DNA of 64,000 nt from Oikopleura dioica (Eukaryota; Animalia; Chordata): contig OU015568.1 in the NCBI GenBank assembly GCA_907165135.1, positions 1,054,001 through 1,118,000 on the forward strand, in the 5' to 3' direction. The position numbers were made by a program, and so were the translations under genes. Shown here piece after piece: positions 9,382-14,849 of the stretch. The notes beneath the pieces were generated by a model. The model had not been told where the DNA came from and ran no database searches. It worked only from the letters and a program-made list of their open reading frames with translations. Within the stretch, counting starts at the first letter, position 1. Each line of letters begins with the position of its first letter.

Positions 9382-11115
9382 TCATTTTTGTTTCTTCTTC
9401 TGTTTTGTTGTGAATAGTACTTTGGTGAATTCAAACCAGTCGTAGAAACAGTTGGATTGTTTGTAGTTGATGTTGAATTCTGCTAGTGTTATGCGGTAGG
9501 CAGGGATGAAATGTTGGAGAATCGAGCCATCAACTAATGAATCATGATTTTCTCCATCAGATTCTCGCAGATTACCTGTAGGAAAAAGATGATGCAATGT
9601 ATGATCTCCAAAAGCGCTTACAGCTATCGAATGAGAAGTATTATCCGAGGATGTCAACCACCTATCCACAATCGTGTCTACTTGCAACAGGCCCCAATCC
9701 GTGTCTTTTCGGCCTTGATGACCTTCGTAGAAATTCGAGGAGTGGTGGTGGATGCCAGGAAGTGATAGGAAGGCGAAAGTAAAACTGAGTTTTTTGAATA
9801 ATTTTTTGCGTTTTCGTACCTTAGAGTACCGTGAAAGACGAAAAAGAACCAAAGATAGCTCTCCTTATTGACCAGATAAAAACCGTAGAGCTCGAGAAAC
9901 GGAATCAAATCAACGAGCTCAAACTCATCTTCAGTAAACAATAAATTACTGATCCATCGTTTCAAAAAATCGATGAAAGTAACGGCTGTCAATAAGATCG
10001 GCTTTTGGCGGATTTTAAGGATTCAATTTCTTTTATATTTTTAAGACCTTAAAACCGTTCCAAGATGAATAGCGAGAAGATGTTGTAAAATAGACTCGTC
10101 GGTTTCGGCATCAGGTAGGCAAATGGCTCAAATTGGGTCACTTCTAGGTCAAGGCATGTGTTTGGGAAGGTATGATGAGACATGGCGTGCGATTGTCGCC
10201 ACCGTGTCGAAGACATCAGCGAGATGTCAAAAAAGCGCATGTGGAGGTTGTCTGATTGATGGAAGAAGTTGTGAGCGACGTTGACGGTCTTTTTTGGGGC
10301 TTTTTTGGAGAGAAAGAAAGAGAATATTTTCTCTTGTGATTTTCTCTGAGGGAAATCCTATCTTTAACCATATCGCTTATCCGTAAAAAGAAGCCCTTCA
10401 CAATGCGCCAAAAACACCCGCCACAACTATCCACCAAACTTGCCCCGTCTCCAAGCCAAGCGCGAGAAACAAAACCATGCAACTAAACCACGCATAAAGT
10501 GTCAAGTGAGTGGAGCTGACAGCCGATGCCCTTTTCGATTCTCTTCGATAAATTGGGAGAACCCGCGCACGCAGGCGGTTGTAAAAGCCATCCGCGGAGA
10601 ATGTCTGAAGATAATTTCAAATGAAAAATTCACATAATTTTGGAAAAAAACTATCAGCTAGTTCAGTTCAAATTATCTCTGATGAAACGTACATATTTTG
10701 AGTTTCTCGCAATCGTGGCATTCTTTACAAAGTATTTTTCTTTTCGGAGTTCTCAATTTTTCATTTTCAAAAACCGGAAAAATCTCGAAAATAATTTAAG
10801 AACTCGATTAAAATCAGATTTGCTTTTTCTATCTCAATATGATGGCTTTCAAAGAGCTCGGTGATATCTGTCCCTTGATTCTTCTCAATCCATATTTTTC
10901 CTCCAGGATGCTTATCGACAAACTCCGTCAGATCTTGAAAAATCTCCTTCCATTCAGAAAAATTTTCTTTTACCATAAAACTTGTCGTGAACTCGCCAAA
11001 GTTTCGCTGGAACTTTGTCGATTTCTCTCCGATTTTCAAACCACTCATTCAAAATGTCGATTCTTTGCAAATCCCGAACCGGGTATTTTTCAAATTTTGA
11101 TGTCTCTTTCATCAT
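9382..11115 (-). CDS. Cytochrome b5-related protein (cyt-b5 fused fatty-acid-desaturase-like)
   Basis: LWRVHD...FVDKHPGG...[12 protein letters not shown] (b5 heme motif). His boxes AHNFFH, HAMSHH and [10 protein letters not shown]. Confidence 0.88.
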
Positions 11116-13571: not shown

Positions 13572-13712
13572 TTTTTGAGTGAAAACGACTCAAAAGTCAT
13601 CAAAGCAAATCTGATAGTCCAAATCAATTTAATAAATATGAAAATCATAAATTTTTCGTACACAAAATAAAAAATTCGACCTTCTGATATTTATTTGATT
13701 CGTTATTTATTT

Positions 13713-13753
13713 GGGGTACGCGTTTCGGCGACAATTGAGCCTTCATCAGCCCC
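13713..13753 (-). ncRNA. Minimal type I hammerhead ribozyme (inverted copy)
   Basis: Reverse complement reads GGGGCTGATGAAGGCTCAATTGTCGCCGAAACGCGTACCCC. It differs from the plus copy only at two stem II loop bases. Confidence 0.85.
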
Positions 13754-14211
13754 TAGTACAGATATAAATTTCACAGCTCAGAAAAATGAAAGAATACTCT
13801 CACTTAGAGTTGGACAATTTCGAATGAGATTGAAAGTTGAAAACAAAAGATGAAAACTCGCTTTCGCGGCAGATGTAATGGAGCGCCAGAGAAAGCGAGT
13901 TTCAAATTTCTGCTTCAAACACAAACTCGTTTCTGTTATCTCGAATCAACCGTACTACAAAGACCGTACTCTATGTGAAGCGTTTTCAATCAAATTAAAA
14001 GATCGAAGCTTAATTAAGCAGATCAAGTTCGCTGAAGTTAAATTTCTGTAATGGAGCATTTGAAACTCGCTTTCTCTGGCGCTCCATTACATCTGCCGCG
14101 AAAGCGAGTTTTCATCTTTTGTTTTCAACTTTCAATCTCATTCGAAATTGTCCAACTCTAGGTGAGAGTATTCTTTCATTTTTCTGAGCTGTGAAATTAA
14201 TATCTGTACTA

Positions 14212-14252
14212 GGGGCTGATGAAGGCACAATAGTCGCCGAAACGCGTACCCC
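14212..14252 (+). ncRNA. Minimal type I hammerhead ribozyme
   Basis: GGGG-CTGATGA-A-GGC(acaatagtc)GCC-GAAA-CGCG-TA-CCCC. Full catalytic core, stem I GGGG/CCCC, stem II GGC/GCC, palindromic ACGCGT stem III, GUA cleavage triplet (predicted cut after 14248). Confidence 0.85.
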
Positions 14253-14849
14253 AAAAAAATTTCGAATCAAATAATTATGAGAGGTCAACACTGACAATCT
14301 TCTGATATTTGTCTTGCTTATCACTGAGAAAAATCCAACAAATAAAAAATGATGAAAAGTAATTCGATAAGCCCATAAATGCCTTGATGAAATCGTAATT
14401 ATATCCGCTCGTCGATATTTTATAACCCGGCTTTGACAATAAAAAGACATTTGTTTTCCAAACGAAATTAATAAAAAAATATGGGTTCTGCTGCGAAATA
14501 AAACGACTCGCTATTATAGTTTTCATTTATAATTTGAAGTTATCAAATTTAATATTATGTTCGTGTTCAAATGTGACCCGGAAACTCTGTTTATAACCCT
14601 AATTTGTCAACCACAAAATAATTATCACTATCATTTGTCCACAATGATCATAATGACCAAATATGTCAAAATAAATTTGTCATAAAACTTTTCATTCGTC
14701 TGGCTACCATCGTTAACAAATCGCTAAATTAAATAAATAAAAATAAAGATGTCGCGGTCGAGTTCGATTGCATGCCCTTTTCCCTAGTAAAGAAGAACAT
14801 GATTATGATAAGAGAGTTCCAGATTTGTAAAAACAATAATTTTTTCAGA

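Follow-up and report, generated by a model that had tools for sequence, protein, structure and literature searches.

An insertion of 606 bases at positions 13693-14298 of the window (the whole 64,000-nucleotide stretch of the Oikopleura dioica genome that was analyzed, positions 1,054,001 to 1,118,000 of contig OU015568.1 in assembly GCA_907165135.1) is very probably a non-autonomous, 5'-truncated copy of a low-copy Penelope-like element (PLE), which arrived as a single insertion, carries a hammerhead motif in each of two inverted arms and would derive from two cDNAs. The presence of PLEs in O. dioica and that of minimal hammerheads in PLE repeats (since 2014) are already known, and the finding is in itself an ordinary one. 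As to whether the family is already catalogued, a point that a preliminary description of this DNA had raised, PLEs of O. dioica have been published, but a literature search turned up no paper in which hammerheads are connected with Oikopleura PLEs. In the annotation of the Okinawa O. dioica assembly, PLEs were reported as "almost absent", with 44% of the repeats unclassified (PMC8008620). The family described here occupies about 33 loci, several of them with 100% identical arms, and the motif model eases its annotation. This set of insertions is small and clean, with legible PLE footprints (a 12-15-bp duplication, a one-sided tail and an inverted arm of fixed length that ends at a hairpin), and its four subfamilies provide a compact natural covariation series for a hammerhead with a loop-less helix III.

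Anatomy and integration footprints of the insertion

The 606 bases form one insertion between perfect 12-bp target duplications. The raw repeat search returned inverted arms at 13683-13907 and 14058-14282 (225 nt, 96% complementary, spaced by 150 nt), and gap-free global alignment placed the true arm homology at 13693-13907 versus 14058-14272, a length of 215 nt that is free of indels and has 7 mismatches (96.7%). Past this point, the right arm extends for another 26 nt (14273-14298) that have no counterpart in the left arm. The flanking direct repeat, CTTCTGATATTT, is identical at 12/12 positions between 13681-13692 and 14299-14310 and abuts the element ends. The spacer (13905-14054) consists of the C-terminal 49 codons and the stop codon of an open reading frame (ORF), is colinear with the ORF end of longer copies, and meets the inverted arm at a 5-nt microhomology, CAAAT (13903-13907). 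The preliminary description had recognized near-identical inverted arms, although their length, given there as 217 bp, is 215 nt with 7 mismatches by alignment. It was also right about the 12-bp repeat outside the arms, which is a target-site duplication of the kind seen in at least 9 further copies, and about a 150-bp spacer with a GIY-YIG-like C-terminus, which proved to be the last 49 codons and stop of an ORF for a reverse transcriptase (RT) and a GIY-YIG domain. The features, with window coordinates and strand, are as follows.

13681-13692, no strand: left target-site duplication, 12 bp (CTTCTGATATTT), from the repeat search
13693-13907, minus: inverted arm, the reverse complement of 3' UTR positions 1-215, without tail, from the alignment
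13706-13711, minus: AAUAAA hexamer immediately 3' of helix I, common to all subfamilies
13713-13753, minus: mirror copy of the minimal hammerhead motif, predicted cut between 13717 and 13716
13853-13903, minus: mirror of the conserved hairpin (13-bp stem), in the innermost part of the arm
13905-14054, plus: ORF remnant, last 49 codons and stop, covering the last strand and helix of the GIY-YIG domain
14058-14272, plus: sense arm, 3' UTR positions 1-215, from the alignment
14062-14112, plus: conserved hairpin with a 13-bp stem (14062-14074 with 14100-14112)
14212-14252, plus: minimal type I hammerhead motif, predicted cut after A17 at 14248
14273-14298, plus: 26-nt tail at one insertion end only, conserved among subfamilies, a PLE-specific end signature
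14299-14310, no strand: right target-site duplication, 12 bp

The insertion corresponds to one integration event at a 12-bp staggered target cut, which left an inverted 3' UTR arm, 49 codons, and a sense arm with a 26-nt tail. Target duplications of 12-15 bp, AT-rich and directly outside both arms, are present in 10 of the 13 two-armed copies; because a single duplication brackets the unit, the inverted arm, internal piece and sense arm were inserted together at one staggered cut. The element ends are unequal: one stops at about arm position 215, and the other adds a conserved tail of 25-26 nt, which is on the sense arm in the window and on the inverted arm in most sister copies, and which was seen at the outer ends of copies L031-L040 and L060. 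The hairpin at 14062-14112 starts 10 nt past the first base of the stop codon and shows three compensatory pairs among the subfamilies. Inverted arms stop between arm positions 1 and 10 in 11/11 two-armed elements, usually between 1 and 5, at a point immediately beyond the base of the hairpin and 10-14 nt downstream of the stop codon's first base; no description of an inverted arm that ends at the base of a conserved hairpin was found in the PLE literature. Elsewhere in the family, the junction between inverted arm and internal piece contains filler, of about 25 nt in one copy (L037:1300-1345), where it includes a 12-nt direct repeat, and of 2 nt in another (L060:1325-1335). Every inserted arm spans both sides of the hammerhead cut site, so the templates had not been cleaved by the hammerhead.

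The two window arms differ at 7/215 positions (3.3%); of 11 further two-armed copies compared, 8 differ at 0-2 positions (0-1%). On account of this difference, the window copy is among the older members of the family, even though its target duplication is still perfect, and the adjective "young" that had been applied to it is a relative one. No empty site, the search for which had been proposed as a check, is present in this assembly, in which the flanking sequences are single-copy. Each of the two arms has private changes with respect to the subfamily, and on this ground an origin of the arms from different template RNAs, considered since C2:3222878 has the helix II variant of the left arm as well, was rejected.

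Several smaller observations concern the same region. All 7 arm mismatches lie within the outer 112 nt (roughly p = 0.01 if randomly placed), a clustering that is absent from the other elements compared. The AAUAAA hexamer, intact in the left arm, is lost in the right arm at 14254-14259 on the plus strand (14256 is A, not T); it lies about 13 nt before the short-type element end and could be a poly(A) signal or mere AT-rich conservation. About 2.6 kb upstream of the element, at window 10767-11048 on the minus strand, an exon-like ORF matches the Pfam cytochrome b5 heme-binding domain (E 9e-9), and none of the other eight ORFs tested between 9.4 and 16.4 kb, including the two nearest the element, has a Pfam match.

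The element family and its encoded protein

The arm or the 606-bp unit matches about 33 loci in the 64.3-Mb genome, many of them as inverted pairs with a spacing of 0.15-2.8 kb, and there are also head-to-head pairs in which each arm is shortened. Solo arms occur at about 13 loci, which is what might be expected had the window unit arisen from two independent PLE insertions that came to lie head to head. Such an origin is extremely improbable, given that a single target duplication encloses the unit in its entirety, in the window as in 9 further elements, that the arms are 99-100% identical within most two-armed elements as against differences of 14-23% over the arm (77-86% identity) among the four subfamilies, and that 11/11 elements have the inner end of their inverted arm inside one and the same stretch of 10 nt.

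Long terminal inverted repeats (215 bp) and a perfect 12-bp flanking repeat, taken as a target duplication, would also suit a foldback or MITE-like DNA transposon, but this identity of the 606-bp unit is hardly credible: the spacer consists of the 3'-terminal part of an RT/GIY-YIG ORF; the sister copies differ only in the length of ORF retained, with internal pieces of 150 to about 2800 nt between the arms; the ends are asymmetric, with a one-sided tail; the length of the duplication varies from 12 to 15 bp; and the junction between remnant and arm in the window is shared by no other locus in the genome.

The assignment to a PLE rests on the protein encoded between the arms of the longer copies. 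Three of these have a Pfam RVT_1 match in the inter-arm ORF. The 626-codon frame of one copy (L033) contains a DKG-like block (which reads DKE), a YGLPK-HK-like block and YVDD, and has a C-terminal module, GVVY...C.C...YQGET.R....R..EH ... E...I....LN, that was aligned to relatives; YVDD and other RT blocks can be aligned with rotifer and schistosome relatives. The closest relatives are environmental proteins (63-80% identity), then rotifer and Schistosoma proteins (about 26%) with the same domain set. TERT matches weakly in the profile search (E about 0.009), and the PDB sequence search with the family protein returned generic RTs only. The Pfam GIY-YIG model has no direct match to the family's own protein and matches 6/12 aligned relatives at the aligned position (best E 3.3e-5). 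For an AlphaFold model of the last 144 residues (pLDDT 78), the best structural matches, as far as the top 14, were GIY-YIG nucleases only, among them the catalytic domain of I-TevI (Z 7.3, rmsd 2.5 Å, 82/92 residues) and the N-terminal domain of UvrC (Z 6.8). Matches to these two nucleases had Z values of 6-7.3 and covered almost the full domain.

Domain matches and the predicted fold identify the longer copies as endonuclease-positive (EN+) PLEs, with a single ORF for a reverse transcriptase and a putative C-terminal GIY-YIG nuclease. Since the window spacer encodes the last 49 residues and the stop of this ORF, the window element is a 5'-truncated EN+ PLE, and the link of its arm to RT and GIY-YIG ORFs elsewhere in the genome bears out the PLE membership that had been proposed. 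The window copy encodes no enzyme and is most likely inert.

The elements are about 2.9-3.3 kb in length. No direct pseudo-LTR was seen in the copies examined, in which the upstream repeat is inverted. Judging from the several copies with identical arms and from the long open frames, the family is of low copy number and apparently recently active. Scans of metagenomes, one with the protein and one with the motif pattern, found no relatives. Copy L031 (C2:4638700-4643600, minus strand 3677-1231) is among the longest, with 2403 nt between 100% complementary arms; its coding region comprises two overlapping open frames of 664 and 159 codons, and this split would imply a frameshift or an intron.

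The hammerhead motif

On the plus strand, the motif consists of helix I GGGG (14212-14215), CUGAUGA (14216-14222), an extra A (14223), GGC (14224-14226), a 9-nt loop (14227-14235), GCC (14236-14238), GAAA (14239-14242), CGCG (14243-14246), U (14247), A17 (14248) and CCCC (14249-14252). Helix III is the palindromic ACGCGU, 6 nt long and loop-less, and the cleavage site is GUA. The CUGANGA and GAAA boxes, the type I order and the U-H site are found in both window copies and in all subfamily majority sequences. Two hammerhead motifs on opposite strands, as first described, were thus confirmed at 14212-14252 (plus) and 13753-13713 (minus), and the cut proposed after 14248, predicted from the motif, is at the correct position for a type I hammerhead.

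A strict motif pattern found 21 copies in the genome, against 0 for a reversed control, and a covariance model found at least 59 motif copies in the 64.3 Mb. Alignment of the homologous segment of 48 arms gave 31 distinct sequences in four subfamilies. Between subfamilies, the core boxes and helix III vary solely at N7 (U/C) and H17 (A/C), the positions left free by the hammerhead consensus. The unpaired nucleotide after A9 is A in 29/31 distinct sequences and G in the other two, both degenerate; the G10.1-C11.1 pair that closes helix II is G-C in 28/31 and G-U in 1; ACGCGU is kept in 28/31, each of its three self-pairs being standard in 30 or 31 of the 31. The stems are compensated, with helix II variants GGCAC/GUGCC, GGUC/GACC and GGCC/GGCC, which include a C-G to U-A double change, and with GGGG/CCCC versus GGGA/UCCC in helix I, a G-C to A-U double change. 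In the named structure, 87% of cells are paired, compared with 22-51% in slid controls. Double changes occur at three pairs (10 cells), and the observed pairing or covariation was reached by 0/500 shuffles, a result that counts as support and not as a probability, the aligned rows being related sequences. In other copies of the element, core (CUGAUGA/GAAA), extra A, G10.1-C11.1 and palindromic helix III are thus retained and the stems compensated, in agreement with the original interpretation.

The motif is small. Helix I has 2-4 bp, and helix II, previously described as a 3-bp stem, does form GGC/GCC, but in the right copy it can extend to 5 bp with one bulged C. The Rfam hammerhead models, proposed earlier as a check, gave no match at the gathering threshold or at E up to 10, as expected because these models require helix III and the motif has none of its own. 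The stability of the monomer fold is no better than that of shuffles (z -0.4 and +0.4). Two plus-strand copies cofold as a double hammerhead, with an intermolecular 6-bp helix III and a trans helix I, at -30.3 kcal/mol versus 2 x -11.5 (-23.0) for the monomers. In the left (minus-strand) copy, helix II has two private changes, at 13733 and 13738, with which another dimer pairing becomes the minimum-energy one. The designation "intact ribozyme" applies to the motif only, in view of the poor cleavage of such minimal hammerheads in vitro and a monomer fold equivalent to shuffles.

Minimal hammerheads of metazoan PLE terminal repeats were described by Cervera & de la Pena in 2014 (PMC4209133), who listed as hallmarks the extra nucleotide, G10.1-C11.1, the palindromic helix III and covarying families. 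The Oikopleura motif possesses all four, and the PLE hammerhead properties cited in the preliminary description are correct against this source. Shared with the published motifs are the location in PLE terminal repeats, the CUGANGA and GAAA boxes, the unpaired nucleotide between A9 and G10.1, the G10.1-C11.1 pair, a short palindromic helix III that implies dimeric action, a short helix I, and covariation; the arrangement also resembles that in Schistosoma, where motif pairs lie on opposite strands 100-700 bp apart. The hosts listed there include no tunicate, whereas Oikopleura is a larvacean. The loop-less 6-nt ACGCGU helix III differs from the published motifs; helix II has 3-5 bp in Oikopleura versus 6-8 bp in most metazoan PLE motifs, and the family has tens of copies rather than thousands. 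The published minimal hammerheads cleave poorly in vitro (PMC4209133).

It is possible, though on balance unlikely, that the motif is conserved for a role other than cleavage, such as RNA-RNA dimerization or protein recognition in the 3' UTR, and makes no cut in vivo. The low or absent in vitro activity of minimal hammerheads (PMC4209133) points that way, as do the finding that hammerhead mutants leave PLE insertion in vitro unaffected and that no Anolis reads end at the cut site (PMC11167929), the inserted arms that span the cut site and hence come from uncleaved templates, and a helix I of 2-4 bp with an unstable monomer fold. The variation, however, is of exactly the catalytic type, with only N7 and H17 free, G10.1-C11.1 kept and the stems compensated, and the Anolis PLE hammerhead cleaves with the protein present, its C3/G8 mutants behaving as expected (PMC11167929).

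The placement of the two motifs also bears on whether the stub is an animal retrozyme-like non-autonomous element, propagated as a circular RNA through double hammerhead cleavage. PLE terminal repeats are the presumed source of retrozymes (bioRxiv 10.64898/2026.07.22.740005), but animal non-LTR retrozymes consist of tandem direct repeats with a sense hammerhead each, whereas the Oikopleura stub has no tandem array, its motifs lie on opposite strands so that a transcript carries a single sense ribozyme, and its junction is unique in the genome. We give this identity very little credence and retain that of a truncated PLE.

Apart from this family, two weak matches to the motif model on opposite strands, about 35 nt apart, were found at C1:8256972-8257103. 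This pair may represent another PLE family, more divergent than the first, in the form of a head-to-head stub.

Proposed integration model and relation to known elements

Canonical EN+ PLEs comprise the Penelope/Poseidon, Neptune, Nematis and Hydra clades (Craig et al. 2021, PMC8557442). Like these, the Oikopleura elements have one ORF with RT and then a C-terminal GIY-YIG, frequent 5' truncation, an inverted 5' copy, a one-sided tail, AT-rich targets, variable duplications, and a hammerhead near the 3' end. Both the inverted 5' copies and the tails of PLEs have been described before (PMC8557442, PMC11167929). The Oikopleura tail has 25-26 nt, compared with 30-40 bp in the published elements (PMC8557442), and the Oikopleura family further differs in the fixed length of the inverted copy, the lack of a direct pseudo-LTR in the copies seen, an element length of about 2.9-3.3 kb, and DKE in place of DKG.

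In the Poseidon PLE of Anolis, RT starts at two adjacent internal sites and both target strands are cleaved and extended (Frangieh et al. 2024, PMC11167929); hammerhead cleavage is dispensable for insertion in vitro (PMC11167929). The Oikopleura footprints agree with that system in the two 3' start points separated by a tail of 25-40 nt, the use of both strands, and templates left uncleaved by the hammerhead. The Anolis evidence is biochemical (PMC11167929), whereas Oikopleura is known here from genomic footprints only, and the position of the tail and start sites differs, being within the ORF start of a tandem unit in Anolis and at the extreme 3' end of the UTR in Oikopleura.

Published PLE biochemistry suggests a route by which the Oikopleura insertions could have formed. 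A dimeric RT-endonuclease would nick both DNA strands, and reverse transcription would be primed on each strand at either of two neighboring start sites internal to the 3' UTR; the use of two such sites would explain why the tail is present at one end only. On one strand, a short cDNA would always end at the base of the conserved hairpin just after the stop codon, and would be joined, through microhomology or filler, to a longer cDNA of the other strand, a joining that would yield inverted arms around an internal piece of variable length. The two-cDNA joining model and the order of its steps are inferred.

As for the hammerhead, which lacks a helix III of its own, ACGCGU would need another copy as its pairing partner, and the resulting double hammerhead is predicted to cut after GUA (14248). 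Such cleavage is expected to be weak and probably protein-assisted.

A further proposal, which we put forward as speculative and consider improbable, is that the inverted arm represents a defined intermediate: the short cDNA stopped at the hairpin would prime second-strand synthesis on the long cDNA, and the palindromic hammerhead might pair templates for the dimeric enzyme. If this were true, the Oikopleura footprints would expose a still undefined step of Penelope integration.

A transcript that spans the whole stub would bury the ribozyme in a hairpin of roughly 208 bp. The predicted fold has 208 arm-to-arm pairs at -401 kcal/mol, with the ribozyme fully buried, in line with the earlier suggestion that read-through of both arms would form a double-stranded RNA (dsRNA) that sequesters the ribozyme. 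Given this fold, dsRNA or small-RNA silencing fed by the stub transcript would be plausible on physical grounds, and genes for Argonaute/Piwi and tandem RNase III proteins are present in the genome.
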